A stretch of 64,000 nt of DNA from Eutreptiella sp. 'Long Island Sound 2002' (lineage: Eukaryota > Protista > Euglenida), in assembly GCA_964036045.1 (NCBI GenBank), contig OZ038379.1:10788001-10852000 (forward strand). Reading direction: 5' to 3'. How positions within the stretch are numbered: position 1 is the first letter of the stretch; every line of letters begins with the position of its first letter. This document shows positions 26,576 to 52,066 of this stretch, one piece after another. The translations under genes and the position numbers were made by a program. The notes beneath the pieces were generated by a model. The model worked only from the letters and a program-made list of their open reading frames with translations, was not told where the DNA came from and searched no databases.

Positions 26576-28130
26576 CGAAGAGACAATATGTGGGAAGAGG
26601 GTCTTCGGCCCCCTTCCCTAAAAAACGTCCGCTGACGGCGTTTACCCGTGCACAAGGGCATGTATACGCATATACGTACAGCCCTGGCTCAGGCCGTCTC
26701 GCTTTCAGTGTGCCCTGGGGCTGGGGTCCGTAACTGCACTTTTGCTGCAGGCTTTTGGGCGGTGAGGTGCGTGCGTGCCACAGTGGGAGCAGACACCAAG
26801 TGCATGCCGCACAGCAATGGAAGGCCCCTGGGGTGGCCGCAAGAACCCCGTGAACTTCAAGAGGTCTATGTAAGGTACACAGCCCCGATTGTGCACTGGG
26901 GTCTCATGGTGACCCTCAATCAACGCAAGAGCATTGGGATTTTTCACGGCTCCACCGTGTGCTCCAAGGTTGCTCTATTTGGAGGTTGTCCTTGTGTTCT
27001 TGTGGAAGGGGTGATGTGCCCCCCCTTCCTCCTAAACCAAATCCCTTTCTACCAAATTCATCCCCCTTCTTAATTAGGCCCCGCCCCCCGCCGTCAAGCT
27101 CAGGCAGGACCAAGAAAATCCATTTTCCTGGGGTCTATGCACCTCGTACATGCCGACCTCTTCAACCTGATGACCGTCCAAATCGTCCCATGCTCAGCCC
27201 ACTGTCATCACTGTGGCTGAGCCAAAGGAAGGGTGCGATGCTATGCCATTACATGGCGGCCGGGGGGGGGGGGGGGGCGGGGGGGCAATCTGCAATGGGC
27301 CCCGTGCATGTGAGTTCAAGTTCCACGAGCGATGTGTGGCCTTTGCTGGCAGTCTGGGCCGTCCGGCACACCATAACACAAGGGGGGGGGGGAACAATGA
27401 GCAAACAGGACATGGGACTGGGTTGCACCAAAAAGTGGCAGGAACAAGGCAGTATAACGGAGGTTCTTGCGGTTCTGGGCCATCTTGGCGCTCAACAGGA
27501 TGAACAGCTTGTCACCTGAAGACATGACGTCCGTGCGTTGACGTGGATCAGTCAATGACCCACAAGGGCGTGGTGGGGGAATGGGGTGCAAGGGGCCGCT
27601 GGAAGTTGATACACAGGGGGCCACGGGAAAAAAAATTCGCAGAATTTTTTTTCCGTACCCCCCCCCCCCTCCCGGGGTACCCCCTGAAAAAAAGGTACTG
27701 CACTTGTTAGGAAATTTTTTCACAAGCAGAACCCAGGGAAGTGCCCGACTGTTGGCGCCAAAGGCGCCATAAGAAAATTTTCCTTGATGCCGCGGAGGGT
27801 GAAAAAATGGTTTTTCACCCCATGTATCGTCTTATTCTTTACTGTGTGCCAATTTGAAAGGCATGAGAGATATCTTTTACTCTGCTTTTGCACTGCAAGT
27901 GGCGAATGAATTACTTTGGGTGTTGCCCTTTTGCTACTGAGCACACCAATTTCTTTCCCTGAGGCAACACAACCAAATGGTTGAAGACTTCTCCTCAAAG
28001 GGTCCGTGGTAAAACTAAGTAAAAAAAAATTTTTTTTAAATTTTTTTTTACTCAGTTTCAAAACTGAGTAAAAAAACAATTTGTTACTCAGTAAGTGGGG
28101 TTTCTACTCAGTTGCGAAACTGAGTAAAAA

Positions 28131-28492
28131 ATTTTGCCCACTTGTGGGCCACTTCTGATTTTGCCCCCCGCTCTGAAGCGGTGGGGATCCCCGAGACGGC
28201 AGGGGTGAGGTAGCCATTTTGCCCACTTGTGGGCCACCTCTGATTTTGCTCCCGTGCTCTGAAGCGGTGGGGATCCCCGAGACGGCAGGGGTGACATAGC
28301 CACTTTGCCCACTTGTGGGCCACTTCTGATTTTGCCCCTTGCTCTGAAGCGTTGGGGATCCCCGATACGGCAGGGGTGAGGTAGCCATTTTGCCCACAAG
28401 TGGGCCACTTCTGATTTTGCCCCCGGCTCTGAAGCGGTGGGGATCCCCGATACGGCAGGGGTGAGGTAGCCATTTTGCCCACAAGTGGGCCG
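28131..28492. repeat. 85-bp tandem repeat (~4.3 copies), each unit with two internal palindromes
   Basis: Units start at 28131, 28216, 28302, 28387 and 28472. Each contains GCCCAC(TT/AA)GTGGGC and GGGGATCCCC. Confidence 0.93.
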
Positions 28493-28494
28493 CC

Positions 28495-29560
28495 ACAAAC
28501 ACTGCTCCCACATTGGGGCCCGCGAGAAGGCAGTTGTTTGAAACCACCCTATTGATTGGTTTCCGCCTTGGGGACCCCGAGACGGCAGTGGTTATTAGCC
28601 ACATTAATTGCGCATCCCCTTGAGGACTCTCCAAAGAGGGGGTTTACGTAGGCCCATCGATTGCTCACCACATTAGAGACACTAATAAGGCATGGGTAAT
28701 GTAGCGACATTGATTGCTGACCATCTTGGGAACACGGAGAAGCCAAGGGTTATGTAGCCATAGTCATTGCTCTCACATTGGGGGCCGCGAGAAGGCAGCT
28801 TTCCTGTAGCTGCATTGATTGCTCCCTGCTTTGGGGACCTCGACAAGGCAACGGTTAGGAATGCACATTGATAGCTCTCACTTCTAGGGAAGTTGCAAAG
28901 CTGTCATTTCGGAGCCGCATTGGTTGCTCAACACTTTGGTGACACTCAGAAGGGACTAGATACATTGCTTTTAGCTTTGGTGACCCCGAGGAGGCATTGA
29001 TGGTGTCGCCATGTTGATTGCTCCACTCTTTGCGGATAGCAAGAAGGCGGTCGTTACGTCATGACTTTGATTTGTCCACTCTTTGGGGATCTTGCAAAGA
29101 CAGGAGTTATGTAGCCACATTTACTGCTCCCCCCTTTGGAGACCCCGAGAAGGGTGAGCTGACTTAGGCACGTCCATTGGTCCCAACTATAGGCGGCCCA
29201 CCAAGGAAAAGACTATCTAGCCACGTTGCTTACTCCCCACTTTGGGGATCGTGGGAAAGCAACCGCTAGGTAGGTGCATTCATTGTGTCCCATCGTGCGG
29301 ACTCCAAGAAGGCGTTTGTTATCTAGCCAATTTAATTGCTACACATTTGCGGATCGCAAGAAGGTAGTCATGATGTTTCCACACCGATTGCCCTGCACTT
29401 TGGGGTTCCCGCTAGGCCAGGAGCTGTAGAGCCCCGCTTATTGCTCCCTACGTTGGGGCTTCTATAAGGTATGGGTTTTGTAGCCACATTGGTTGCCCAC
29501 CATGTTGGGGACCCCGAAAAGGCAGGGCTTTGCTACACCCCAGGGATTATTTGTGGCGTG
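28495..29560. repeat. Degenerate ~60-bp-period repeats related to the 85-bp unit
   Basis: Recurrent TTGGGGACCCCGAGAAGGCA and TAGCCACATT motifs with many mismatches. Confidence 0.65.
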
Positions 29561-29929
29561 TTTGCAGTTGGTACAGCTTGCATCTGAAGGCATACTTAGG
29601 GGTCACCAAAACCTGGCCAACCCCTATGGGATGTGCATGGTGAGCACGGGTTGTCAGGTGATGTATTCTGTGTAGGGACGGGGTATATTGTGTGACCCGG
29701 GTTGCTGATGATGCATGTTTACATGTGTGTGCCCGAGGGTGCAGTAGCCGCTGACCATAAGCTTGGGATTAGAATGTCAAGTTGGTTGGCAGCACCCGGT
29801 ACCTCATATGCTGCCAATGCCATATGTGCACTGTGCCGTGACATGCTGGAAAAAAACACAAACAACAGCTCTCTTTGTCCCTCTCCCTCTGCTTCCTCTC
29901 TTTTGCTTTCTCTTTCTCTACCCCCCCTA

Positions 29930-30062
29930 TTCCTCTCTCTCTCTCTCTCTGTCTCTCTCTGTTTGTTTGTGTGTTTCTGTCTTTGTGCATATCTGTGTGT
30001 GTTTGTATTTCTATCTGTCTGTCTGTCTCCCTTGTCTCTGTCTTTCGCCCTGTTTGTGTCTC
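29930..30062. repeat. (CT)n/(GT)n compound microsatellite
   Basis: Read directly from the sequence. Confidence 0.8.
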
Positions 30063-30716
30063 TGGCTTTGCATGTGTCTGTTCACAGTCAGCCCGTTCAC
30101 AGCCAGTTCACACCTGTGAGAGCCCACAGTGGTATCATGGCAATGTCATTTTGTCCCCTTTTTGGGGGCCCCACGAGAAGGGAGGGGTGTCGTAACAACT
30201 TCTGATTTTGTGCCCTTTTTGGGGGACCCCCGAGAACACGGGGGTCAGGTAGCAATTCCGCCCAATAGTGGGCCCCCGAGAGAGAAGGGGGAATGTAACC
30301 ACTTCTGATTTTGGCCGCTCTTGTGGGAAGTGATGTTTATAGCGTAAACACAAAGGTTTTGAGCTGTTGTCGGAATGACCTTACACGCAAGGGTAATGAC
30401 AGTCTTGGGTCTTGGGGTAATGTTTGGCTAGGATAGGTGGGGATGCAGTGTGCTTGCTATGTGTTTCCGGTTTGTCTTTTGATTTGTTGTCACGGTGGAT
30501 GGGTTAGATACCCTGGAGGCCAAGGTCTTGCTTGAATTTGCAAGCAATGTTTTTGATATACAGGCAGAGTATCTAGGAAATACTATTTTGAGTCGGGCAG
30601 CAAATGCCACTTGGAGAAGACTGAATTCAGCTGAGGGCGGCGCCGGCTCAGTGTCTGAAGCGTTGGAGAATATGTTTCCCGCCCATCAAGGTGAACAGCA
30701 AAAGTTGTGGAACCTC

Positions 30717-32040
30717 CTAACGGCTTATGAACCGCGGTTTGGCCATATCCTGCGAGGCAATGATATGAGGCTCAAGGGTTTGATTGAGACTGCCTGGCCA
30801 TCTTGTCCAAGTGCCTCCCTTTTTGCGGCGTAATTTCTCCGTTGACTTTGCGAACACCCAATCTGCCTCCTCTACCACTAGCGACACCACGCCTCCTTTT
30901 TCAACCACCTTGATCCCCGATAATTGCTTCTTGACGGGGCCCTCAAAGAATCCCTCTGTAGCAATTTGCAGGAGCCTACCATCTAGTGCCTCCCCGGGTC
31001 GCAGCCATCCGTGTATCCCGCTGTACTGCAAAATATTCTTGATGGCCGCCACATATCCATCGCGCATCCCCTTCTCCAACCGTGCCTAGACAATCAACCG
31101 GTAGCTCTCTCCGAATTACCCAGACTCTGCCGCGGCAAACTCCTCCAGTCCATTTCGCATCTTTTGTGCCTCTTCATTCATGTGCAATCCCCCGACCCCC
31201 CCATCCCCCCTTTCCCCCACGATTCATTGGCAAACAAATTCACAGGCTTGGCCGCTCAGTGTTGCCTTCTGCAGTAACGACACGCCTTTGCTGGGGGTGA
31301 CGAACAATCTTGCCACTGTCTCCGCATGAGAAAATGGTGTTTCCCGTTTATACACTTGAATTTGAATTCACTCGGTCTTGACCTCCTCGACGCCGGATTA
31401 GACGATTTTCTGGATCTTCGGTGCTTCCCATCGCTGCTGCTATCACTGTTGGATCCCGACGAGGAAGACTACTAGATGATGAATCAGACGACGATGACTC
31501 AAAGCTACTAGCATCACTATTCCTCCCCTTCTTCCAAGACTTCTTCGGGTTTTTCTGATCGCGAGCCATCCTCTTTTTCTGCTTCTTTTTCTGCTTTTTC
31601 TTGCTAGATTCCTTCGCCCTTCGCACTTTTTCCTCCTCCTTAATGCACTTCTTGCCTTTCTCATCGTAGCACAACAGAACCTCCCATATTTTCACCTCCA
31701 CCATGCCAAACTCTGCCGCCGCCTCGCTCTCACTAACCATCTCCCGGATCAGTTGAGGAAACTTGCGAACATACTTGGGAGCTCCAGGTCACTTCCTCCA
31801 AGGCTTCAAGTTTTTCATCTACAGAACTCTAGCCGATCTCACCTCCGCATCTCCACTGCTCAACGTCAAATTGCTCGTCCTCAAGCATGCTCTCATCTCC
31901 TTCTGGTAGCGCTGCCCCAAAGTCGATACTGTCCACTGCTGCTCCACTCTTCGGTTTCTCCGACCGGGTCGACCTCTATGCGGTCCTCATGTTATTCACC
32001 TTCTCCAAAACTACGCTTCTATACTGCTCGAGCTACATAG
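30717..32040 (-). pseudogene. Interrupted charged/Lys-Ser-rich ORF (possible gag-like ORF of the YR element)
   Basis: ORF pieces at 31348-31740 and 30717-31079, plus a stop-interrupted frame at ~31760-32040. The function is an inference from position only. Confidence 0.35.
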
Positions 32041-32617
32041 CCCAGGGATCGTGTATGAAATCATAGCAGCGAGAACCAATTTTTCATGGCCAAAGATGAA
32101 GTGCATGGCGTTGGCAGTCTTGTCATTATGCAACCTCCTCGGGAGGCTAGGGAGGCATGCACAGCCCACAGAAGTGGGTTGGGTCAACTGGTGTTCAGAG
32201 GTAAGAAGAGTAGGCATCCAAGTAAAGGACGCGGGGCCATGGCCTGACAGATGGCTACGATTCTTGGATGAAGAGCGGCGACGGCGAGGGGCATACCCAA
32301 TAGTCCCGAATTCTTTTGCGTCACCGAGCAAGCTGGAGGCGCAGTGGATTCAACTGGTCAGTATCATGAACCAAAAGCAATTGCGATGGCATGGTCACAG
32401 GAGATGTGGGTCAGCACAGGCATTAGTGGCGGGAGGGCGGGGCCCGTTGCTGCAGCTCATGGGAGGATGGTGCACGCCGGCGGTGGCGGTATTGTACGCA
32501 ACGCCGACAGGACATATGAGAGTAGGAGGCGTCAGCCCGTGCCCGTCCGTTCCGGTGGCGAGTACGAGGCCTCCTACGGATTGTGGACCTCGGGACACTG
32601 GTGGGCGACGTGGATGA
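31900..32617 (+). pseudogene. Tyrosine recombinase (phage-integrase family) C-terminal catalytic region
   Basis: LRWHGHRRCGSAQALVAGG..LLQLMGGWCTPAVAVLYA carries an HxxR box, a GxW motif and a candidate catalytic Tyr at the expected spacing. Confidence 0.7.
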
Positions 32618-33995
32618 GAAGGGAAATTCGAGAACTCGGTTTGGGGGAGACGGAGAATGGTAAAGTATTGGGAGCCCCTTACGCGTCCCGCAAGAGAGCC
32701 AAGAGGGGTTCCACAGGAGCAAGAGATTTCCGGTTCGATCCCGAAGAGGTGGGCGATTCAGGAGATTCAGGAGGCATAGCTTGGGCCGGATGCGGGTAAC
32801 AACTGACGTGGATGTGCTGAGCGTGGTGGACAATTTGGCTGTGTCCACGCCTAAGGGGTTTCGGGCAAAAGTGGCATAAGGAGCACTGGTGTTGGCTGCG
32901 GGATTGCAGGACATCGCTGGTCCGGTCAGGTGCAAGGTTGTTTTGCTTAGGTAGGCTCATGGCACGGGCAGGGCAACTTCACATTCACACATTACTAGCC
33001 CTATCACCGTGCTTTTTACATAGGTCCTCGAAACCTGCATCTTTGTAGTCCTTCCCAAATTTGTTTCACTAACCAATGCCTGCCACTTCAACAGTTTGCT
33101 AGTATGATCCAGCCCAAAATGAAGATGAATATGCAATAGAAGAGAGCGTTGGATTTACCCTAATGTATCTCAAGCTTCATGCACAACAACAGGTTGTGGA
33201 GTTTACGACATTTTGATAGCATGCCTCGGTAGGATGCAAAATTGGATGCTGTTATATTATCTCACTCCACTTAAGGATGGACGTAGCTCGTGAGGATCCC
33301 AAAGCTATTGAAGAATGAAAATATTAAAGCATCTAGCAGCAAGGGCATTCAACTCCAACAGGGCATTTGTGTTATTCCCGGGTGCATCCGATTGACAAGA
33401 AGAAGAATCCAACCACTGACCGCACCTTTGAGATGCCCACAACCTCTCTAGTTTGCTTTTTTTCCTTTTGCAAGCGTTTACACTGCCCACATGGGGGTGG
33501 GTGTTCATGCATCACTTCAAGCCAATGGTCCCCCCCAGTCTGTGCGTTGCACTAAGTTTTGAACCATAAGCCTTTTCATCACCATCTGACATCCTATAAT
33601 CCCATGGGACTGTGCTCCACTGATCCAGCGTTGTTGTCCTGGATGACCCCAGGCTGTGGTTCAACCCCCCCCCCCCCCCCCTCAATGGCAGGCCAGGTGC
33701 CAGGTCACACAGCCTCTCAGCTCTGTCACACACACAACCACACATGGGGCCGAATAGTCAGCCTCTAAGGCCAGAAGAGTGTCAGGGGCGACTAGCAGGG
33801 CCACCTGTGTTTGTGAGGTTTAAATGACTTTGTCCCATACAGATAGCCTTGGTCTGTCAATGTGCGCGAAACTTCGAAGCAAAGGTGAAGCCATGTTGCT
33901 ACGTAATGGTTCGCAACTGTTTCTGCAAAACAGGTCCACGAGGAGGACGTGGATGCACTCTGCAAACCCCCTGTACCCCCCCCTCCTGTGCAGAC

Positions 33996-37020: not shown

Positions 37021-37212
37021 ACACCACACCACACCACACCACACCACACCACACCACACCACACCACACCACACCACACCACACCACACCACACCACACC
37101 ACACCACACCACACCACACCACACCACACCACACCACACCACACCACACCACACCACACCACACCACACCACACCACACCACACCACACCACACCACACC
37201 ACACCACACCAC
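37021..37212. repeat. (ACACC)n pentanucleotide microsatellite, ~38 copies
   Basis: Read directly from the sequence. Confidence 0.97.
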
Positions 37213-38066
37213 AGGACACCACACTGCACCGCATTGTGGCAGAAGGTGCCTAGGGTCCCTCGTAGCCGCCGACGACCCCTGCTCTCTGTCTCCTGTGCTG
37301 GTGCTTGCTCGCGCACTGCACTGCCTCAAACAGACCTCGTCGTGGAGTCATTCAGGGGGCCCGGAAGGCAGCAAATGTCTCCTGGTGCTAGTGTGTACAA
37401 GATGGCCTTTGGGTCTGCACTGCACAATGTGTTGGTGTTGTTGGTTGACCCAGTGTTGCTGATCGAGGTCCCTTGTGAGAGGCAGTGTTTGTTGGTGGAG
37501 CGAAGGGGGTTGGGGGTGTGATTTTGCGGGTGATAGTGGAATGTACATCGCCACCGCTGCTCACAGCTGCTCCACCCCCCCCCCCCCGTCGCGTGCACCC
37601 CCCCGCCAATACTCTCGCGACTATCTCGGCCGCAGTGCTGGTGCCATGACTCGTCGCAGTGGTCAGACCCGGGGGGGGGGGGGGGCTGGGTGTTGGACGG
37701 GCGAATTGGCCTTACTGAGACACCCCACCCATGAGGGGGGGCGCATTGGGGGCGGGTGGGCTTGGGCTGTGGCTGCGTCGCCCAGGTCTTTCCGCACCCG
37801 GTTTCTGTTTGTTTGCCGCAGACCATCCCTCCTCAAAGACTGTGCTCTTCCGGAAGGTCGGCAGTCATCCTCTCACCGCCGTCGGTTAGCCTCCTGCGGC
37901 TGTCAGTCACCTTCCAACCGCCAGGCTGAGTATTTACGGATGCCGAACTCTTTTCCGTTTGCTGTGCAACACCGCGGTGGCCCCCCGTGCGCGCCCATCT
38001 CCCCCCAACGCCCCTTCTCACACCCAGGCCACCGCAACGGCACCGAGGGGCAGCCCTTGCCACCGG

Positions 38067-38605
38067 ATGGAGTTTGCGGAGGTGAGTGTGGAGGTGGACG
38101 TGGACGACGATGAGCCGTGGACCCCCGAGCCCCACCCCCCGCAGGACCGCAGTGTGCCGGGCTTTCACAGCCCCATGGCCAACGGGCGCAGGGCCGACGC
38201 CGCAGCGTTCGATGCCAGGCAGCCCAAGCGGCCCCGCGGGGCCGACAAGGACGACGACGCGGACTACGTCATGTCCTCCCACTCCTCCTCCGACGAGGGG
38301 TACCCGCGGCTGCGGGTGCCGTCCGGCCGTCGGACGCGGGGGCGGCCCCGGAAGCGCAGGGCCTGCAACGGGGAGAGCTCGGGCTTCGCCGACACCGCGG
38401 CGCTGCCGGCGGAGCATTACGTGCTGTACAGCGACTGCACCGTCGTGGACGCGGCGGGGAACGAGTGCCCCTTCGTCGTCCGGCACGGGCAAGTGGTGGT
38501 GGGGACGGATCAGGTGTGGCGGCGCGAGGCGGTTACCCCCCCCCCCCTTGTGCGCAGGCACGGCCTTGTCTTAGCACGACGACCCGGTGTTGCTGTACCC
38601 TCTGG
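38067..38605 (+). CDS. HDAC gene first coding exon (acidic N-terminus, AT-hook, start of RFTS-like domain); may hide a 42-nt intron at 38516-38557 or extend upstream to the acceptor at 38027
   Basis: GC3-rich codons, the AT-hook motif [11 protein letters not shown], and [17 protein letters not shown]. Confidence 0.65.
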
Positions 38606-41600
38606 GACCAGGCTATTGCTTAGTGGGCAAAATACCCCCCCCCCCGGATGGGGGGGTGGGTGGGTGTAGAGATGGGTGGGTGGGTTAGCGCCAAAATTCA
38701 GCATTTTGGGCTACCAGCCCCCCCCCCCCCCCCGCCGGGGGTGCGGGTGCGCTTTTTGGGGGATTTGGGTTGTGCAGGGCTCTGAGACTGGTCTGAAATT
38801 TTCAGGCATTTTTCACATTTTTTTCCATACGATGTCAGACCTCGGAACCCTTTGTTGCACAGCTTGATTGGAACCGGCTGTTAGCTGAGTTGGTTGTGGA
38901 ACTGAGTGCAACTTTCAAGGTCCTGGGGTCCAACCCCAGTGGAAGCCACTTTTTACTCGTCAGTTTTGCTCTGTTGTTCCAGAGATTTTCACTACAGCCG
39001 ATGGGGGCTTCTCAATCAAGTGCTTGTACCCCCCTTGTATGTGACTGTGGATGGAGGGCATAGACGGGGGGGGGGGGGTAGGGTGGGTGGGTGGGTGGGT
39101 GGCTGAGCCCTGGCCGAGGCCCAAACTAACCCCCCCCCCCCCCCCCCAGGGTCACTAAGCAATAGCCTGTCTGGGACCGCCAATTTTGTGGTCCGGAAGG
39201 TGAAGCCACAAGACCGTGAGCCCTGTGCCTGGGAAGACACGCCGCCGACGGGTGGTGTAGCCTCTGTGATTGGATATGATGGGGTCGCCGAGGACACGGC
39301 CAAGGGCCCCCTTTGGGTAAAGTTAAAGAATCAAAAAAAAAATGGTTCGTTGGTGTTGAATGGCAAAAAGACCGAAGAGTAGCCTAGGCCTGCACCATCA
39401 AAGCTGCCGATCACTGTGAAGAAAAAAAAACGCACCTGCAGCCCCGGGAAGCCCCCCCCCCCCCCCCAAGCCCAATAGATAAAAGGAATGTGCAGCGGAG
39501 ACCCCTTTCTTCACACAGGCTTCCGGCTGTAGTCCCCAGTGGGATCCACCAGAACTGTCCATTGTCTCCACACCCTCGAACTGTTGCAGCATGACTGATG
39601 CTCGTGCCCCCCCCTCCCTCCACCCTGGACCCCCCCGGTCTGAGATCCCCGGCAGGGGCCTGCAGGGCAGTCCATGAGGTGTCACACGCATGAACAGCAA
39701 ACATGGTCTACAGCCTCGTGTGGACTTGGCCTACTGGATGTCAGCCTTCAGTGCACAACTGCCACCAGTGAACTCGGGGGCTCCACTCCAGTGGCCAGGA
39801 GCATTGCGGCGACACGCAAGGAGGGGGCTTGGCAATGGCGCTTTGCGCAGCACTGGGGGGTCGTGGTTGATGCTCGTCGAGGTGTGCCACGTTTTCAAAG
39901 TGGGACTTGCCATGCCACGCCACGCCGTTTCATGAGCCAACACTGGCCAATCGGGTCTTTGCCGCCATGGCCGTGATAACACATGCGTCACTGGGTAGGT
40001 ACAGCGTCCCAAATTCATCATCGCCTCCCTTTGGGGGCCCGATTCCTTTTTTGCCTTTGAGCCCCCACGACAGGACAGCAGGAGACCACTCACCAGCGTG
40101 CTTTCGCCCCCCCCCCCCCTTTCCTGGCTGAACCTCCTGGGCACGGAACCACGGGGAACTGCCTGGCGTATGGCGCAGGGGCACACTCCCCAGGCGACAC
40201 CGAAGGCAAACGGCCTGGAAATGTAGCGCACCCTCGTGTATGACACTTCGTGACTCGCAACCCTCTGGCCCTGTGTCTTGGGGGGGGGGCACTTGACGCG
40301 ATGCATCTGGGGGCACCGCCGCCACCAAGCAACACCTCCGGCAAATGTCGAGGGGCAGCACGGACTTGATGGCCACATAAACATGCAAATCCAGCTCCAG
40401 ATTGCGGGGAGGCAGGGAATGTACATCCAGAAGTCTCCACCAAAGATATGTTCTTCATGGGTGGCCCTGGCACCAGCCCGTACCATCCCTCAAGGGGGGC
40501 CAAAAAGCCTTTAAACCCTCACCCCTCCCCACCTTGTATTGTGACCCCCAACCCCCCTCCCCCTGTTCCCAGGGTGGCGGATCCATTCTTCAAAGCTTTA
40601 GAATCCATCTTGGTCACATTTCCTCGGATTGGGGCTCAAGCCACGTGGCAACCAGGAATTCAACATATCGGTGAGCCAAGCCCTACCTCAAAATCGCATT
40701 GAAAGCCGGTTTTATGCCACTTCAAAGAGACAACATACCCCTACCTCCGCGACGATGCTGAAGCTGAAAATGCGGTTCGTGGATGGAGCACCCTCCCCCC
40801 AAGAAACGGTAGCGCCCAGTGTGGAAAAGAATCTCTCGGTAATGCCCAGAACACTGATTTGGTGGTCTCGCCCTTGGCCCATGACCAGTGACAGTTGGTG
40901 ACTGACAGGAGCGCAGCTGGTTGAGCCACGGCGGTTGGCAGAGAACCGACGGCCGTCGGTGCTTAACCGTCAAACTTCAGCCGTTTCCTGCCAACAATTG
41001 GGGGCGGTCTTGAAAGGCTGTCCTGAGTTGCTGATTGCCGATCTGAATTTTGTTGGAGGGGGAGGGGAGTCCACTGGTGTTGAAGGGCCCTCATGCCCCA
41101 TTGCGCCTTGTATCCCGCCCCGCGCATCGCAGTACGGCAACGGAGAGGGGCACGACGTGGACATTGTCTACTGCCGGAGGCCATTCGGGGGCTACGAGGT
41201 GGCCAAGCTGCCGATGCCGAAGATGTGGCCGCGTCGCTTCCGAGTGCAGGCGGGCCCTCGACACCCCCCAGGTGTGCGGGGCTGTGCAGGGAGGTCTGTC
41301 TGGGCGCTCCGCACTCGGGCTCCGGGGTCCACAGCCGAGTACAGAGGGGCCGGGAATCGGCTGGCCTATGGCAAAGGGTGTACGCTCTACGAGCGACACC
41401 ACGGGCGAAATGCCCGGAAATGCACCGCTGGTGTCTCCCACTTGATGACCCGGAATCCCCCGGCCCCTGTGCTCTCATAAGTGGGGGGGGGGTATTTAGC
41501 CTTCAACAGCCCAGCCCGCCCCAAAGGCCTGTGGGTCATTGCCACCAACTGCTGCACAACACGCCTTCTGAGGGTGTGGTATGGTACGCCTGAACGTCGA

Positions 41601-44600
41601 CGGGGCTTCAACATGAGTTGTGCCCCAAGGGCTGTAGGTCGAGCAGTGGAGGTATTGGTGGCGTAGCGCCCAGCCCCCCCCGTATCAGGGCCACTTCCTG
41701 GGCGAACGGCGCCAGAGGGGGTCGGAGTGCCGTAAAGGCCGAGGAAGTGCAGGTGTAGCCCTGCGGACGTCGTCTCCCTGACCTCGGCCGCGCTTGCACA
41801 AACCGTCAGTGGGGCAATGGGGGGGAAGACGGGTCGCTGCAACGGGTTTTGTTCTGAACCAGCGCCCGGTCGCGCACCCGTCCTGTGTCCCTCGACAGGG
41901 CAGCCCTTCTGCACCGGACTGACGTACGACGACAAGATGCTGCTGCTGGGCACCAGCGGCTTCGACCAGCCGAACCGCATCCGGGCCATCTGGGACATGC
42001 TCCACGCCACGGGCCTTGTGGCCAAGTGTCGCGTGTACAAGCCGCGCCCCATCACCGACGACGTTCTGGAGCTGGTGCACAGCAAAGGGCACATCCACAG
42101 AGTCGAGAATGGTGTGCCAGCTGCAGCGACCCCCTGGGCCCTGGCACTGGGGTGGGCAATAGCAGTAGGCGTGGCCTGGGCTTTGGGGGGGGAGGGGTAA
42201 AGGCTGAGTGACTATGCCGGTCGCTATGTCCGGGCGCACATACTTGCACCTCCACGCGTCGGTGGGTGGGTGGGCTGTCCCCCCACTGGGGTGGGGGTGA
42301 TGGGGGCGGGTTCAAAAATTGGTGGGGGGGGGGGCTGGGGAGGCGTTCATAATACACCGCGACGATGTCCCCATTGTGTAACCCCCCTCCCCCCTCCGCC
42401 GCCGGCATCATCTTTTTTGGGGCGGGCGCCTGGTATTTTGCCTCCCCAAAGGGCACATATCTCGGTTTTCGACTGAGGGGGGGGGTCATTGGAAGGTTTT
42501 CTATTTTCTCTTTTTTGGGGGGGTGCAGTTGTTTGGGGGAGAGCGGGGGGCGGTCATCGTTGGTTGTGCTGGCGGCTCGTTGGTGTGCCTGCTGTTGGCA
42601 CCGTGACCCCCCCCAACCCCATTCTGTGGTGCGCAACAACCCGCAGCACGCGATACCAGTGCGGCGCATGACACTACCAAAGGTTGGGCCGCCCGATTCT
42701 GAAACGCGTACCATGTACGTCCCAACCCAAAGCCCCGCGCCCCGCCGAACACGCTCACACGGGGGAGATTGCAGATGATCCGCCTCCAGTCAAGAACCAC
42801 TGCTCCGCCTGCCACCCCCAAACCCACACACCGCCCGGAGGTCCGCCTCCACAAAACATAACCGAGTGCACTAAAGCGGTAGTACCTACCAACTGGCAAA
42901 CTTAATCCACCCTAACCCCCCCCCCCCCCGCCTGTAGTAGCACGACTTGTCTGGCGACGCTGTCTGACCGCAGTTTTGTGGTCAAGAACGTGAGATGACC
43001 GTGGGCCGGTTGAAGTGGGAAAGGGGGGCCGGGTCATGTGCGTGAACAGTAGTTCCTGCTCACCACAGCCTTGCGTCTTAAGACTGTCCTTGTGGTTAGG
43101 GTGCAGTTTCTGAGTGAACCACAATTCTCACTCGCCAACTGGCAAAGCAAACACGGTATTTGACCTTTTGAGGTTCCTAATTTGCCTATTGTGCCTGTTG
43201 CCCCTATCCCGAGTTCTGTGTTAAACGCCGCATGGTGCGGCATCTGATTGCACCATCACATCGCAGTAACAATGGAAGTAGTTGGAACGACACCGTCAAA
43301 ACCAATGACAAGAACATACCAAGAAAAGGAACAGCATTTTCTGGGGCCCTGAGACCGGACTGTTCAGCAAGGTTTCATTCCAACGCCCTACACAGTGTGC
43401 ACGTGCACGGCCTCTCCCTACGGTCAGTGGTTCACCCCCCCCCCCCCAAAGCTGACTGAGTGCCAAGCATTGCCAGCATCGGCATGGCAGAGACACCAAG
43501 AAGCAGAGGCAGCACGTGTAAGCAGAGGGATAACTGTCCCACCAAAAACGCTCTTCCCCAGTGGCCTGGGACAGGTGGTGCAAACGATTTCCTCCTGAAA
43601 ACCAGTGCGTACGACGGGATACACCACCCGGCACGTCTCTTCAGCCCGCGATTTGAGCGGTTTGAGCTGTAACCCCAATACCTCAGTGCTGCATGGCCGA
43701 AGGTGTGGCATTGTATCTGAGATGAGGACGTCGACCACTTGCCCTCTCAGTGCCATGCCTCTGTATCCTTCTCCGCAGGTGCATACCACAACCCACCAGA
43801 CTTGTGTGTGTCAGAGCACACGCCAGGCTGCGCACGCATCGCTGCCATCGCTGCTGGAAGCGTGGTAGAGATCACCAATGCGGTGTTGGCGGGGGAGGTG
43901 CTGCGCCCTCCACAGTCCTTGCCCCCCCGCCTTCAACCGTCTTACACCTCTCGGCACCCTCCTGCCCGCTGCACCCCCTCTGCACTTCTCTACAACCCTC
44001 TGCATTTCCCCAGCTCAACAGGTGCACATAGAAGGCCCCAGTCCGGTCGCAGTCCTGCCACCAGACACACCCATATCAATAGTATCAGTGAAGTTCAAAA
44101 GGTCGTCACAAACGATATGCCCCCAGTATAACGGCTCGATTGACCCTCAAGGCAATCGTGCGTTGCAAAACCGAAATAGGTTGCACGGTCTCGCCTGAGG
44201 ACAGCCGCCTGCTGAACGCTGAACATAAGGTGAGGCGCCCAGGAAAAGTGCTGGGGGGATGCAGGGCGCGGTTCCTCCGCCTTGGCCAGCCCCCTGCCCT
44301 CCTGGCCACCCCCTACAGCCGCGGTGAACTCGTCAAGACCCAGCACTTTCGAGGCCTGACACAGCGCGCCCGGGGGGGGGGGGGGGCCTCCCACTGCGCG
44401 AGGCCGGTCCGCCGCACTTTTGCGGGCCCTTCCATTTGCAGCAGTCCAATGCCCAAATCGTGACCCAGCTCCAACTGGGACCCGAGGCCACGCTTGGAGT
44501 AGGTTTTGCAGCCGCCCACCACATGTGGACATGATGTGCTCTGGGCCGGCCATGATGATTGCGATTGTGCTGCTCCTGGGGCATGGGGGGGTGGGGGTGA

Positions 44601-45132
44601 TTCCCCCCCTCCACAGGGCGTGCGGACCCTCTGAGGACTGACTGCCTGGCCCATGGCGCACTGTGCTGCTACGGTACACCACCGCGGGTCCAAAACAACG
44701 AATGCGATATACAATTTGACATGTATGCAACTCCTTCACAAGGATTTCCCCCCCAACAGAGTGGCAATAGAGGCCCCACTCCCCCCTACCAGGGCCGACT
44801 CGGAGGGAGGGGGGGGGGGGGGGGGGGCTGCAACTCCCCCCCCCCCCCGAGTTTTGAAAGATAGCGGTGCCGGGGCCATGGCGCCAACGGCACCAAATTT
44901 TTTGTCCCGTGCTTAGTTGAGGGGGGTACTATGCCTTTGGTCCTTAAGACCCTTAAGACTTTCTTCCTGGCAAAGACGAGAAATTGCTATTATTGCATAC
45001 ATACCTCCATACTCCCATGTCCCCAAACACACACACCCCCTTGAGGTATGCATGTGGTAGTAGTAGGTCGCGCGCCCCCCCCCCCCCCTCTTGGGACCCC
45101 CCCCCTCCCGCCGACCCCCCCCCCCCGCCCCA

Positions 45133-45191
<59 letters not shown>

Positions 45192-48100
45192 GTTTTGACA
45201 GATAGCTGGGGCGTGGGTCGCATCAGGACCGATTGTAGTTGCCCCCCCGTGGCAACTGCACGGGGGGAAATTCTGCGGGGGAGAGGGGCGACCCTGCGCC
45301 GCGCGGACCTTGACCCTGTGGAGATCCTGCAGCGCTGTCCTGGAAAGGAGATCAGCCGTTCTTCGAGCTGCATTCTCTCCGCACAGCAGCTGTTCCTTCT
45401 CCTCCACAACACTGAGACCGGCACTCGGCGTGATCGCCGTTGGGCTTCACAAATATGAGGGCAGGGGCAAGGGCGGAGGCGGCGGGGGCGGTGGCGAGGG
45501 CGGGGGCCATGACGCATACCCCCTTAATTCTGTTGCAGTTACGGAATGGCTTTGCAGTCGTCCGCCCCCCGGGCCATCACGCGTGGCGCACCCGGACACG
45601 GGGCTTCTGCTATTTCAACAACGTGGCAGTGGCCGCTCGGGTATGTGCGCGCAAAGGGGCGTTGGTGGGTGTCCGGGGCTGGCCAGGGCCCAGGGATGGT
45701 GCGCCGCAGCAGAGAAGTGTGTGGGGCGCGTGCAGTACTGCTCGGAGGGGTCCTCTGTCCCAAGGCTCGGGGCATCTCAGAGACCACCAGTTCGCCGTCT
45801 ATGGCCTGTGGACTAAGCGCTTGTTGGCCCTTCTTAGGTTGCCCTCCCGGAAGCAGGTCGGTGTGCAGTTTGTGGCTCATTTTCCTGCTGCGCAGGGGGA
45901 GGCGCAGACGCTGACGAACGAAGAGAAGTTGGATTTTCGCTTAAGCGCAGGGGGTCATGGGAGACCCCCAAAATTTGAGCGGGGGGGGGGGGGGGGGGCT
46001 GTCTTGGAAAAGGGCTCCAATGACAGGGACCATTCACCCTTGGCGCCAAGGGTGCCAAACGGAAAATTTTGTCAATGTTGGTCTATGTAAAGAGGGTGAT
46101 GCATGCAGAGGGTGTTGCTAGAATGATACACTGTATGGTTCTCACCCTGGTATATGCATTGAACAGCAGGTATGTTGGTTACCCAAGTAGCCTTAGGGAT
46201 AGGAAATTGCACTTTTTGTTGGTGGACCTCAGGGGAGGGGCAGGCAATTCCCATTTTTCTCCATTTGGAAACAAAAAAGAATGGTGGGCATCTTTTGCAG
46301 CCCAGTCTCACAGGGAAGTGACAGCGAGCAGGTGGAATCAGGTACGCGTATCACCACCACAGGACAGGCCAGCCTGGGGAGGCCCTGAGACTGGGAGCTC
46401 GACCTCAAACAGGGAGGGGCAAATGGGGGAAATGGGTAGTTGTTTGCGCTCTCTTTGGGAAGATGGAACCGTGTTGCCCCACAAACACCAAAATTACAGT
46501 CTGTGTTGCCCCCCCCCCCCCCCCCTCTCTTGATTGCACACGTATTGAATAACTAGGTCCGACCAGCATGCCCTTTTTTTTTATAAAATGCAATGTCATG
46601 CGGTCTCACACACCACATGTTTAACATCGTGCCTGAGGAAACACTGTTGCACAAGACATGGCTTCTGCCCCTGTCCCAACTCCCAAACCCCAAACCAGAG
46701 AGATAACAAGGCAGTTTTTGCATATTGTTCTCAACCTAGGCCCTCCCCGCCACAGCCCGCCCAAGTTCCTCCTGCCCAGCCCACTCTCCAAGCGTTGGTG
46801 CACCATTGCCCCACCTCCCTACTGCATTTCCGTCGGGTGCAACAAAAACATTTTCCCATTCCGCCCTTTTGTGCCACCTAGTGTCGTGCAGGGGGGACAT
46901 TCTCATCCTTGAAGTGGGTCCATGATGAACGGCAGCAAGACATGAAGGAAGCACCGCACCAAGCTGCATGTCTTGTGCATTTCAATGGACTGGTGGAGTG
47001 AACTTGACGCATTCTATTTTGCTTTGTGTTTTTTTGTTTGAGGGTCACGCACTACATGGGTTTTCACGGCAGCAGGATCAGGACAACAACCTCAGCACAA
47101 CCCTGAAGCTCAGAACAGCACCTGGTTTTTTGGCCCGAATGGAGTCACAACGGCAAAACATTCTTCGAAGAACATTCTTTGGTTTTGGTGTCCCCCGGTT
47201 TTCACCATGTTCACGTTGGGCTGCCTAGGTTTCCCCCACCCCCCCCCCCCCCCCAGTTCCCCCCACTTTTTCTAGGGCCCGGCACTTTAAGGGGCCAACC
47301 CAGCCAGGCGCTTCTGAGGCCTGTTCTAGCCCTTTTGGGGGGGAGGAGTGTCCAGGCAGCGGGCTCCAATGATCCCCCCCCCCCAAAAGTGAAAGTCCGA
47401 GCACCCGAAGCAGAATCAGGATATTTGCAACGGATTAGTTTGGGACCATTGGTGCGTTGTTCCGCTCCACTTCGAGGGAATGATGGGATGGGATGTGTCG
47501 GATCGTCTTGGGCATCGGCCCCGTGGTTCACCGCTGGCCAATGGAAAATGAAAGCACATCCAACGACGGGACCGCAAGCACCGGAACGGGCCACGTGACG
47601 GACTTGAACACACTCCACAAGAGGCGGTTCAGACTGCCACAGAGGCAGAGGCGGAACAGCACCCAGCCAAGAGGCAGAACAAGCACCATACTCAGGCGGG
47701 CCCAGCACCCCATCCGTTGTGGTGGAGGGCCATGGTCCTGGGAGTTGATGTAGGGCTGCTGAGGCGGTGGGTGACAGGGCCAAAGTCTGCTCTGGTGCTG
47801 GCATCCCTAGACCTTCCGCTGCACCTCCGTGCGCTTGTTGACAGGCAGCCCTGCAGCACCCGGCCATCCAGCGGGTGCTCATCCTGGACTGGGACGTCCA
47901 CCACGGCGATGGGACGCAGGACATCTTCTACGACGACCCCAATGTGGTGTACTTCTCCATCCACCGGGGCTCCTACTTCCCGCTGGTGGACAATCTCGAC
48001 CTGGGGTCTCATGAACGCATCGGCGGATTCCGTGATTATGAGGTCTGTGCATGGCCCTTCAACAACAAGAAGGACCCCCCTTCTTGTCTCATATATCGCC

Positions 48101-51100
48101 ACCCTGCCATTTCACATATCAGTCATAATCATGTCTCAGAACCCCTCCCCTCTCCCAGACGAAGGGTTGGCGCGCGAGTCGGGCCTGTGTGGTACAACGA
48201 GTGGTGCAGCCTTGGCCGTGCAGCACCACCCATGCCTTGCCCACTACGTCTCCTGAGCATACCCCACGTTCCCACACGTAGGACAGAGCGCAGCAGCTGA
48301 GCATTCGGCCGATGGCCCCGACGAACGGAGACGCGGAACCTTCGCCCTGGTGGGTAGCGATTGCCCCAAGACAGGCGTTAGAGAGCAAGGGAGCTGCCAT
48401 TGCACCCTCCACAGGCACCCCCACCCCCCCCCCACCCTTTGGAGGCCTGGTGAAGTCAAGACCGCACCGCTGCTTGCACTCCTGGGGCACTCCGCCATTG
48501 CACTCTGCTACTGTACCGAAGATTACTGCGGTGTGGAGCCTTAATGTGTTGGTGCCACGACCAGCCACCGATGGAGAAGTGGTGGGCCAACAAAGCGGTT
48601 TGTTGGATGTTCGTGAGTGGCGAGAAGTTGATTGACGCCGCCAACTGCCGGGAGAGCAGCAACACCTGAGGGCTTTGCCCCCCCCCCCCCCCCCCGCCTC
48701 TCCCGTATTGGCAGCCAAATTTCGCATGTACGTTCTGTGGAGTTGTTGATATTCCGGGGAACGCTTAAATAAAAAAATGGTCCGAAATTTGCGTGATTTG
48801 ATTTGGCTGATCAGAGGATACATGTTGTTTTGTGTTTGTTGTGCAGATTGACGCAATGAGACCCTCCCCCCCCCCCCCAAAGCGGTCATTTGGGGTCATT
48901 TGTCTTCTGTTGATCAGTCTTCCCGGCGAGGAAACCCTAATGTTGCTGAGGGCCCAGCTTTCTATGTGTCTGTTTGCTCTGCACGGGCCAACAATTTCTT
49001 CGCCGAGTGTGGGATGCCCACCCATGCCATCGCACTTTGCACTCTGCCGAACCCCCTGCCAGCCCCAGCGCAGAGGGAACCCGAAACATTGCGCCCCAGC
49101 AGATGTTGGGGGGGGGGGGGGGCATGGGGTGGAAGGAGTGTGCACGATAAAGGAGGTGGTCCGCAAAGGGCCTGCGAGTGGTCCCATTCATCATCATTCA
49201 TCACCACAAGGGTCCACAAGGCACTGCTGCAGGGCACCAGAAGTGGGCAAGAGCAGGGCCTGGGTATTTGCCGGTCCTTTTGAGCGCCAGTTTTGGCCAT
49301 TTCTTTGACCCACAAAGGGAGTATTTGAGGCTACTCGGGTCGCAAATTTACCAAAGAGGTTCGGTGAAGTGAAGTAAGGTGCGGGTGTGAGGTTGTCCGG
49401 TAATACCCAGGCCATGCCCTTTATCCCTCGCACCGTACCATCTCCTTCGGGGGGGGTGGGCCTGCGGGCGTGTAGCGTGCGCGCTTAGTTTGCCTTGCCT
49501 CCAGGCTGAGGGTTACTGGGCGACTATAGAGCCACGGGGTTGGAGCCACCACATGCGGGTGGGGCTTTTCATCCGCGGCCACCGGGTGGGTGACAACCAC
49601 CAGCGGGGGGGGATGGTGGTTGGAGAATTGCGGCTGGCCCAGCACTGGTAAGAGGCCACCACCAGCGGGGAGTCTGCATGACGAGCCACCGTGTTGATGC
49701 GGCTGCCATTCCCTTGGAACCAAGAGTCAGTGCCTGGGGGACGGCACCGATGTCCACAAGGTCTCGGAGGGCGGAGGCCCAGAGGAAGGCGCGTCAGCCA
49801 ACGTCCTCTCCTCGGGGCCTGCTGCGGTCCTCCGGCCGTGCCGCCGAATCGGTGTCCGCTAGTAGTAGGACGGACGTGGGGCCCACCGCCTGGCGGGGTC
49901 ACGGACAGCATAGGGCCTCGGATCATGCATTCGTGCCTGTGCCACGCTTGGGGCTCGAACCACGGAACACTGGTTCACGTGTCATGCGCTCTGACAACTG
50001 AGCCACGTCACCTCGTTAGGTCTGGGGGAGGAGTTGAGGTTGGGAGGGGGCGGGGGCTGGCGCAGACCGCCGTTTCACTTCTTCACGCATTGCCCCGCCC
50101 TGCGTTACTGCATCTCCCACAGTATGACGACGGAAGTGGACCCGATCAGGCCAAGGCCCAACAGGAACCGATGCTGGATGCAGCGCCACAGCCCCACTCT
50201 CCCGAGGTATCAGACGCGCCGTGGGAGCAGTGCATCGCTGCCAAAGGTGTGTCATTTCCAGAGGGAACCTGTGTCCTGGCCAGTGCTCGAACGAGGACGG
50301 GTATCCGAGCATGCGCTGGGACCCCACTGCCGTTTGGGCTGACACTATATCCGCCCCAACCCGCTCCGTCTGCCCCCAACGGCCCACCAACCGTCGTGTA
50401 ACCGCCAGACTTTTGCCCCCCCCCCCACCGCCTTTCCAACCCCCAGTACCCCTGGAGGGTCATCTCTCCCTTGCTCAAAAGCAACCGCGACGGGCTCCCT
50501 CTCCATAGATGGCACAGCACCTCCAGCGCGTTCCGCCACAAACCCTGTCCATCAGCCACCATCTTGCGCACAACGGCGTCATGGACCCCCCCCCCCCCAA
50601 GGGTTGGGTGGTGCTGGGTCTGTAGGACTCGCACCTGCACTGGTATGATCTGGAGCATCGGCTCAGGGTCACCCACCCCACAATTGACCACCAGTCGTCG
50701 TGGGGGGAGGGGACTGGGTGCCCGCCTCTTTCTGCCATAAGCCACGGCCGCCGGAAAAAGAAGGCTGGTCCCCGGTGCCAGGGGGCGCTGGGCACTCTCC
50801 CCCTCACGTCGTGCACAGGCTCCAGAGGTCTAAACTCCTTCTGCGGAGCACGTGAACGAGGTCTATGTAGGGCTTCTGGGGGGGTTTCCACATTTTGATG
50901 GGCGTGGCCCCAATGCAGCATGTGATATGTAGCCATGACTCCAGGTGTGGCGCCGATATGGCAAGGGGTGTACGTGGCAATGTGTACATCTCACGTGCGC
51001 ACGAGAGCCGTTCCCAGACTCCACCCCATTCCATCATCCCCCCCGTCTCCACATCCACCTTGGCTTCCATCTCGCGCCCTCTGTGCGCTCCAGGGGGTGC

Positions 51101-52066
51101 CATAAGGACGCTCACCCTTTTTTTTTTGCTATGGCATCCACTCTCTGATGTTTGGTGGCTACCCACCAACCGCCATCGGTTACCCACCAACCGCCATCGG
51201 TTACCTACCAACCGCCATTGGTTACACACCAACCGCCATCGGTTACCCACCAACCGCCATCAGTTACCCACCAACCGCCATTGGTTACACACCAACCGCC
51301 ATCAGTTACCCACCAACCGCCATTGGTTACACACCAACCGCCATCGGTTACCCACCAACCGCCATCGGTTACCCACCAACCGCCATCAGTTACCCACCAA
51401 CCGCCATCGGTTACCCACCAACCGCCATCAGTTACCCACCAACCGCCATTGGTTACACACCAACCGCCCCATCGGTTACCCACCGGCCGCCATCGTAGGG
51501 CGTACTGGACACTCCGAGTTTTTTTTTTCCTTTCATTACGGCACCCCCTGGTGCGCTCTACGCGCCCACTCTGCGGGCACTATGCGCCCTTTGTCCCCTT
51601 CTCTGATTGACGTGCATCCCCCGCAGGAAAGAACATCAACGTCCCCGTGCCCGGGGGCTGCACTGACGACGACTACTGCACCATTTTGGAGGAGCTCCTG
51701 CTGCCCATCGCCGCCCAGTTCGCCCCCGATCTGGTGCTGGTGTCCTCCGGGTTTGACGCGCTCAAACAGGACCCCACGGGCAGCGTCCAGACGCGCAGCC
51801 ACGCGTCGCACACGTGCCTGACGCCCGCGGGGTTCGGCAAGATGACGCAGATGCTGATGCCGTTGGCGGGGGGGAGGCTGGTGCTCGCGCTGGAGGGCGG
51901 CTACGACCACGACTGGACCGCCAGGGCCGCCACGGAGTGCGTGCGCGCGCTGCTGGGGCTGCCACTGCTCGGGCAGCCGGAGTACGTCCCGGGGCCGCAC
52001 GTGGAGTTGCCTCAGGTGATCAACAACGTGAAGGATCAGCTCCGAGGCTCGTGGGTATTCAAGTGA
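38067..52066 (+). CDS. Zn-dependent histone deacetylase (class II-like, single catalytic domain) with N-terminal AT-hook and putative RFTS domain; 9 exons, ~671 aa
   Basis: Exons 38067-38605, 39175-39316, 41133-41271, 41899-42111, 43779-43897, 45539-45640, 47845-48042, 50123-50246 and 51627-52066 join in compatible phases (2016 nt = 672 codons). HDAC motifs: [61 protein letters not shown]. Confidence 0.88.
38609..39169. mobile_element. 561-bp hAT-type MITE inserted in the HDAC coding sequence; candidate non-conventional intron (38606-39174)
   Basis: Perfect 17-bp TIRs CAGGCTATTGCTTAGTG (38609-38625) and CACTAAGCAATAGCCTG (39153-39169). The 8-bp direct repeat TCTGGGAC sits at 38601-38608 and 39170-39177. 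Confidence 0.9.
38876..38948 (+). pseudogene. Degenerate tRNA-like sequence (SINE-head-like) inside the MITE
   Basis: A-box-like TAGCTGAGTTGG, variable loop AAGGTC, T-arm CTGGG-GTCCAAC-CCCAG, and ends GGCT.../...AGCCA over 73 nt. The anticodon arm does not fold cleanly. Confidence 0.45.
39175..39316 (+). CDS. HDAC gene exon 2 (RFTS-like region)
   Basis: TANFVVRK...[22 protein letters not shown]. The phase-0 donor TGG|GTAAAG fits the next exon. Confidence 0.6.
41133..41271 (+). CDS. HDAC gene exon 3
   Basis: [27 protein letters not shown]..., with a GCAG acceptor and a phase-1 donor G|GTGTGC. Confidence 0.7.
41899..42111 (+). CDS. HDAC gene exon 4 (start of the deacetylase domain)
   Basis: [11 protein letters not shown]...[13 protein letters not shown]...[10 protein letters not shown] matches the class II HDAC TG..YD..M / E.P.R / VHS pattern. 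Confidence 0.88.
43779..43897 (+). CDS. HDAC gene exon 5
   Basis: [22 protein letters not shown], with phase 1 and phase 0 boundaries. Confidence 0.85.
45137..45189. repeat. 53-nt poly-C homopolymer
   Basis: Read directly from the sequence. The length may be inflated by sequencing or assembly error. Confidence 0.85.
45539..45640 (+). CDS. HDAC gene exon 6 (HH catalytic dyad)
   Basis: [34 protein letters not shown], bounded by TTGCAG and GTATGT. Confidence 0.93.
47845..48042 (+). CDS. HDAC gene exon 7 (Zn ligands D, H)
   Basis: [37 protein letters not shown]. Confidence 0.93.
50123..50246 (+). CDS. HDAC gene exon 8 (low-complexity loop insertion)
   Basis: This was the only candidate found that bridges the phase-0 donor at 48043 to the phase-1 acceptor at 51626 (CCCACAG ... 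G|GTGTGT). Confidence 0.55.
51161..51497. repeat. 21-bp tandem repeat ACCCACCAACCGCCATCGGTT (~16 copies) in the last HDAC intron
   Basis: Units start at 51161, 51182 and so on. Each has an AACCG/CGGTT mini-hairpin. Confidence 0.95.
51627..52066 (+). CDS. HDAC gene exon 9 (second Zn-ligand Asp, catalytic Tyr, stop)
   Basis: KNINVP...[19 protein letters not shown]...[11 protein letters not shown]. Confidence 0.93.

Follow-up and report, generated by a model that had tools for sequence, protein, structure and literature searches.

Does a transposon that interrupts an open reading frame (ORF) of a euglenid gene represent a newborn intron, or an ordinary insertion within an intron of the conventional kind? 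The question is raised by a locus of Eutreptiella sp. 'Long Island Sound 2002', in a window of 64,000 nucleotides (assembly GCA_964036045.1, contig OZ038379.1, positions 10,788,001 to 10,852,000; the window is the whole stretch analyzed, and positions given below are those of the window). A histone deacetylase (HDAC) gene in the window contains an element that has terminal inverted repeats (TIRs) and a target site duplication (TSD), which a sequence-only reading had placed in a coding exon and had interpreted as an intron-generating transposon with the geometry of the non-conventional (NC) introns of euglenids. The element is a genuine MITE (miniature inverted-repeat transposable element): it is short, non-coding, bounded by TIRs, present in multiple copies, and flanked by a TSD. 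It is probably not an insertion in a coding exon, as composition and splice sites point to an ordinary insertion 95 nt inside a conventional 2.6-kb intron. The whole explanation, a hAT-like MITE in the conventional first intron of the gene, was given a probability of about 0.7.

Against the proposed exonic position speaks a break in composition that coincides with CAG/GTGTGG at 38513/38514, the end of exon E1 (a slash marks the splice border). The GC content of third codon positions (GC3) was 0.61 in the in-frame tail 38514-38606 and 0.65 in 39179-39316 on the other side of the element, in comparison to 0.58-0.59 in the nearby non-coding background (overall GC) and 0.83-0.93 in the other confident exons of the gene. 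When the GC3 of the pooled exons was compared with that of the two element flanks, Fisher's test gave a p-value of 7e-9. The codon log-odds of the two flanks were -5.5 and +6.7, on a scale where coding windows had a mean of +22.5 (minimum 7.2) and non-coding windows a mean of -3.2. Neither Pfam nor PDB gave a match to the flanking pieces, which left the RFTS domain proposed across the flanks unsupported.

Also the splice sites support the intronic placement. The donor of E1 is GTGTGG, those of E3 and E4 are CAG/GTGTGC and ATG/GTGTGC, and the donor that the sequence-only reading had given to its second exon is GG/GTAAAG at 39317; the consensus of conventional introns in E. gracilis includes GTGTG at the 5' end and a C-rich tract followed by CAG at the 3' end (PMC11170887). 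Exons E1, E3, and E4 are in frame with matching phases, the predicted junction between E1 and E3 being GATCAG/TACGGC, and an in-frame splice from 38513/38514 to 41133 skips both the element and the proposed second exon. We infer the actual use of the 38513 donor from the sequence. A copy of the hAT-like MITE would then have been inserted, with an 8-bp TSD, approximately 95 nt 3' of the donor of the first intron, in a gene whose predicted product joins an N-terminus with an AT-hook to a class II histone deacetylase. The MITE would most likely be removed passively, along with the intron 38514-41132, by the ordinary spliceosome. The features of the locus are collected in the table.

Table. Features of the HDAC locus in the window.
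Feature	Positions	Strand	Details
Exon E1	38067..38513	+	149 codons, GC3 0.93, AT-hook; ends at consensus donor CAG/GTGTGG
Inferred conventional intron	38514..41132	+	2.6 kb, GTGTGG ... C-rich tract and CAG; encloses the MITE and the proposed 'exon 2'
Left TSD copy TCTGGGAC	38601..38608	+	8 bp
Non-autonomous TIR element, hAT-like MITE	38609..39169	.	561 bp
Left TIR CAGGCTATTGCTTAGTG	38609..38625	+	17 nt
Right TIR	39153..39169	+	17/17 complementary to left TIR CAGGCTATTGCTTAGTG
Right TSD copy TCTGGGAC	39170..39177	+	perfect 8-bp match
'Exon 2' of the sequence-only reading	39178-39316	+	placed within the inferred intron; GC3 0.65
Exon E3	41133..41271	+	phase 0 in frame with E1, GC3 0.83, donor CAG/GTGTGC, ends in phase 1
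Exon E4	41899..42111	+	start of histone deacetylase domain (Pfam PF00850); acceptor phase matches E3
Second CAGG...CCTG element, unrelated to the first	51091..51550	.	11-bp TIR, perfect 8-bp TSD GTGCGCTC

If the element were situated within a translated exon (38067-38608 together with 39178-39316) and precisely removed by the NC machinery, it would be a newborn intron, and the mRNA would be expected to include the segment 39178-39316 and the junction ...CCCTCTGG/GACCGCCAAT... (38605/39175). We consider this unlikely, even though every sequence requirement of the experimental NC code, purine included, is present at the element. As had been claimed, the unspliced ORF 37959..38669 ends within the element, and removal of 569 nt (the 561-bp element and one TSD copy) leaves the upstream reading frame open across the site, also in frame with E3 and E4. 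The open frame is nevertheless weak evidence, because 15.7% of the 77-codon windows in the non-coding DNA of the gene region were free of stop codons (a chance of about 0.16), and because open stretches of 60-99 codons spanned the reconstructed empty sites of other copies of the element, where the flanks were not coding-like. The stretch downstream of the element scored best in the predicted frame, but weakly so (+6.7 versus -6.5 and -13.6), and the GC3 and codon scores of both flanks were at the non-coding level. A translated exon would in addition need the non-consensus donor GTAAAG at 39317 despite the consensus donor at 38514, its flanks have neither a homologue nor a domain, and none of the nine other two-ended copies of the element was situated in coding-like sequence.

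Two further explanations were considered. The upstream ORF might be a separate gene or a non-functional remnant, with the element in its 3' untranslated region or in intergenic DNA and the HDAC gene starting downstream. The phmmer search against 1.84 billion representative proteins detected no homologues of E1 beyond its own genomic read-through ORF, and E1 included no Pfam domain, which would suit such a division; the in-frame joining of E1, E3, and E4 via three consensus GTGTG...CAG introns and the strong coding composition of E1 make it very improbable. An exonic insertion that is not removed at all would truncate or inactivate the N-terminal part of the protein at the stop at 38669. The read-through stop is indeed only 20 codons inside the element, but the insertion site is not coding-like in composition and the downstream exons have kept intact frames and high GC3, so that this explanation is hardly credible.

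Several observations weigh against the placement of the element in a conventional intron. There was no RNA support either way: in the three sequencing runs that included the locus it was present as contiguous genomic DNA, and a small RNA run was empty. The frame is open across the excised site and on into E3, and GTGTG is also present twice within E1, so that the motif alone is no proof of use. Two short genuine HDAC exons had GC3 values of only 0.71-0.74, and a GC3 of 0.64 over 77 codons is therefore unlikely but possible for coding sequence. With regard to the hAT-like nature of the element, no hAT transposase with its TIRs was found, a genome-wide search by DNA pattern not having been made.

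The structure of the element agreed with the sequence-only reading, as its 561-bp length, perfect 17-bp TIRs, and 8-bp TSD were all confirmed. The TIR CAGGCTATTGCTTAGTG had only two matches in the window even when three mismatches were allowed (0.11 expected). The TSD TCTGGGAC could be taken for a 9-nt repeat, but only for the reason that the element begins with C and also the right flank continues with C. When CAG...CTG ends, a TIR of 9 or more, and a TSD matching at 7/8 or better were demanded in a strict scan, two such TIR/TSD structures were identified in the window, the other being at 51091-51550, versus none in each of five shuffles. The interior consists of poly-C/poly-G hairpin modules, and no protein domain was found in the interior of the 561-bp element. 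In RNA folding the terminal stem closed the whole element in both the minimum free energy and the centroid folds (z = -3.7 versus shuffles). The core has a tRNA-like appearance for which ARAGORN gave no confirmation, and the Rfam matches in the element were sub-threshold G/C hairpins. A second, independent public assembly (ENA ERZ25074135, locus L001) had the site likewise filled, the length of a poly-C tract being the sole difference. In the mapped reads, no empty-site joint was present among the best 15 of 153 joints.

Tracts of C or G, 11-18 nt long and one of approximately 90 nt, are scattered across the element and the whole locus (e.g. 38635-38735, 39066-39148, and 45097-45189) and can form G/C hairpins. 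At these tracts the depth of mapped reads rose to spikes in the thousands, and false joints were numerous. The right-hand part of the MITE includes a C18 tract with AG after it (39131..39149, + strand), which resembles a Euglena-type 3' splice site with a C-rich polypyrimidine tract and CAG. The insertion may have created a cryptic acceptor at this position; splicing to it from the 38513 donor would lead to a stop after two codons.

The relatives of the element were located through ORFs called inside element copies, after which the loci were inspected; the sample is small and was selected by way of these ORFs. The first protein search detected one diverged copy, and its 120-aa ORF as query produced 20 related ORFs, all on other contigs of the second assembly, which sets the size of the family in this euglenid genome at at least about 20 copies. 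Eleven loci (L002-L012) were examined, of which nine included both ends of the element, while one had the left end alone and another the right end alone. Together with the copy in the window, the ten two-ended copies were 520-913 bp long and had near-identical TIRs of 17-20 bp starting with CAGGC, giving the termini CAGG...CCTG. All ten had an 8-bp TSD, perfect in eight copies, 7/8 in one, and 6/8 in one. The interiors were 80-85% identical to the copy in the window, while the TSD halves had mismatches at only 3 of the 80 positions summed over the ten copies, which makes the insertions much more recent than the divergence of the copies from which they came. Of the youth earlier ascribed to the element, the intact TSDs remain, but copies only 80-85% alike do not suggest a recent burst. 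Coding-like sequence on both sides was found at none of the ten two-ended copies. The claim that a transposon was here in the act of turning an exonic insertion into an intron found no support at the locus.

The usual criteria for hAT elements are an 8-bp TSD and CAGG termini, with TIRs beginning (C/T)A(G/A)NG. The naming of the element as a hAT-type MITE holds in this sense, and the family can be called hAT-like on two features alone, the 8-bp TSD and the CAGG termini. The TSDs of the ten copies show a roughly palindromic pattern, nYYnnRRn, which was compared with the hAT target consensus nTnnnnAn: position 2 was a pyrimidine in all ten copies (T in five and C in five), position 3 a pyrimidine in nine, position 6 a purine in eight, and position 7 A in seven. 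An autonomous hAT with the same TIR did not emerge, as no transposase was found among the regions examined, i.e. the neighbors of copy L004 and the region 28109-33919. The latter 5.8-kb region, in a lower-GC block, was tried as an autonomous element on the grounds of its ends CAGTTGCGAAAC/GGTTCGCAACTG, with a TIR of 11/12 and a flanking repeat of 6/8; it was rejected, its ORFs lacking a transposase domain, and the candidate may be due to chance. At L004 (2041-2402), a family copy reduced to its left 380 nt is situated downstream, at a distance of approximately 100 nt, of an ORF that includes a SANT/Myb domain (DAMP1-like), and no transposase domain was present among its neighbors.

The second element of the HDAC gene, with the ends CAGGGGGTGCC.../...GGCACCCCCTG and an interior of 16 copies of a 21-nt tandem unit, lies between the probable exon ending ...GGRGL-G/GTGCCC and CAG/GAAAGAAC, the acceptor of an exon that encodes KNINVP.... 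Judged from these borders, also this element is probably located within a conventional intron of the gene. Elsewhere in the gene, GT-AG sites offered no explanation for the junction of the HDAC exon ending ...HRGSYF(P) with the exon encoding ...GSGSPTPQ...GGRGLG (47980-50720). The two exons can be joined in frame via a CTG...CAG pair at 47983 / 50555, in which ten bases are paired, yet this adds 30 unexpected residues. A permissive scan for intron pairs of the NC type produced 1797 matches and was uninformative, and a stricter scan left the HDAC exon D/E junction without a solution. One or more NC introns are probably present within 47980-50720. An ACACC microsatellite with 41 copies (37021-37224) precedes the first coding exon by approximately 850 nt.

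The resemblance of the element to an NC intron can be evaluated against a code defined via knock-ins in E. gracilis by Nomura et al., 5'-N3CDG.../...CH'GN5-6/R (PMC12501133). The 5' spacer is required to be exactly 3 nt, the 3' spacer functions best at 5 nt, and pairing beside CAG/CTG is essential, the published cis-code taking at least 12 paired bases; splicing was also seen with fully synthetic introns in agreement with the code (PMC12501133). The NC consensus of E. gracilis includes CCAGG at +3..+7 and CCTG at -9..-6 (PMC11170887), and NC introns are released as full-length circular RNA, after the conventional introns (PMC11282704). When the present locus is cut at 38606/39174, CAG is found at +4..+6 and CTG at -8..-6, the following base 39175 is G, and the 3 and 5 unpaired nucleotides amount to one TSD, in agreement with the sequence-only reading. 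The element with its TSD copy reads GAC-CAGG...CCTG-TCTGG/G, which fits the code, both consensus strings, and the purine. Any TIR element with CAG...CTG ends and an 8-bp TSD satisfies the spacer rule automatically, since 3 + 5 = 8. Judged from the ten TSDs, the target preference nYYnnRRn would tend to provide the purine that the code requires, whichever way the element is inserted; at the second element the purine rule fails, position 6 of its TSD being C. By its sequence the element, were it in an exon, could be removed independently; nothing at the locus requires or demonstrates such excision.

A wider hypothesis follows the same geometry: NC introns could largely be old insertions of hAT-like TIR elements, with their 3+5 spacers being one 8-bp TSD and families such as the present one their living source. 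We regard the chances of this as evenly balanced. The distances measured by the splicing machinery, 3 nt ahead of CAG and 5 nt past CTG, would together be one TSD, and the loss of the element with one TSD copy would restore the pre-insertion mRNA exactly. Pyrimidines at TSD positions 2-3 and purines at positions 6-7 would supply the purine in either orientation. The derivation of the 3/5 offset from hAT-MITE insertion, as put forward in the sequence-only reading, is plausible in the light of the family TSDs and the gapC intron described below.

A MITE origin of NC introns was proposed already in 2013 (PMC3935182) and restated in 2016, 2024, and 2025, and TSD-like repeats and TIRs at NC introns were noted in a review of 2024 (PMC11282704). 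Among the papers on Euglena NC introns that we examined, none names hAT or any other transposon superfamily, gives a TSD length, or connects the 3+5 spacers with an 8-bp TSD. The equation of the two, itself plausible, is a sharp refinement, apparently unpublished, of the long-standing MITE-origin hypothesis, and does not introduce a new class. NC introns make up 72% of all introns of E. agilis. For the origin and the odd geometry of Euglena NC introns the family provides a concrete, countable candidate: its ends are CAGG...CCTG, and its strict 8-bp TSD has the same length as the 3+5 spacers established by experiment, so that the MITE-origin hypothesis becomes testable on existing intron annotations. 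The present copy itself is most likely an ordinary intronic insertion and is no case to be quoted for the birth of an intron.

In comparison with known systems, the element shares with hAT MITEs of the Ac/Ds-like type the 8-bp TSD (10/10 copies), short TIRs with a CAGG start (YARNG type), the lack of coding capacity, a length of 520-913 bp, multiple dispersed copies, and perhaps a roughly palindromic target preference; it differs in an interior built from long C and G homopolymer hairpins. With Euglena NC introns it shares the 3+5 spacers, a 17-bp terminal stem, and borders without GT-AG. NC introns are situated between exons and absent from the mRNA, whereas the flanks of the present element look non-coding. 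Like the introners of Micromonas, Symbiodiniaceae, Amoebophrya, and others (PMC11282704), the element has ends and a TSD that would by themselves suffice for its precise excision from RNA. Classic introners depend on the spliceosome for their removal and are defined by many spliced copies in exons, in contrast to the family here, where the count of coding-flanked copies is 0/10.

A close parallel to the TSD geometry is intron 4 of gapC in E. agilis ACOI 323, a strain-specific and recently gained NC intron with 8-nt direct repeats GTCCCAAC (PMC4770533). In Table S3 of that study the intron is given as GTCCC/aac-cattaccttg...caaggtatg-gtccc/AAC, so that the repeat flanks imperfect inverted ends; its authors take the repeat as a sign of double-strand-break repair and not as the TSD of a transposon (PMC4770533). 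As in the present element, the part inside the borders includes 3 nt from the left repeat copy and 5 nt from the right one. The gapC intron differs in being a verified intron of a conserved gene and in having the ends CAT...ATG, not CAG...CTG. Its layout is exactly the one that a TSD-making TIR element would leave. The statistics of the present family support the idea that the 3+5 spacers equal a TSD, and the gapC intron supports it more strongly than does the HDAC locus.

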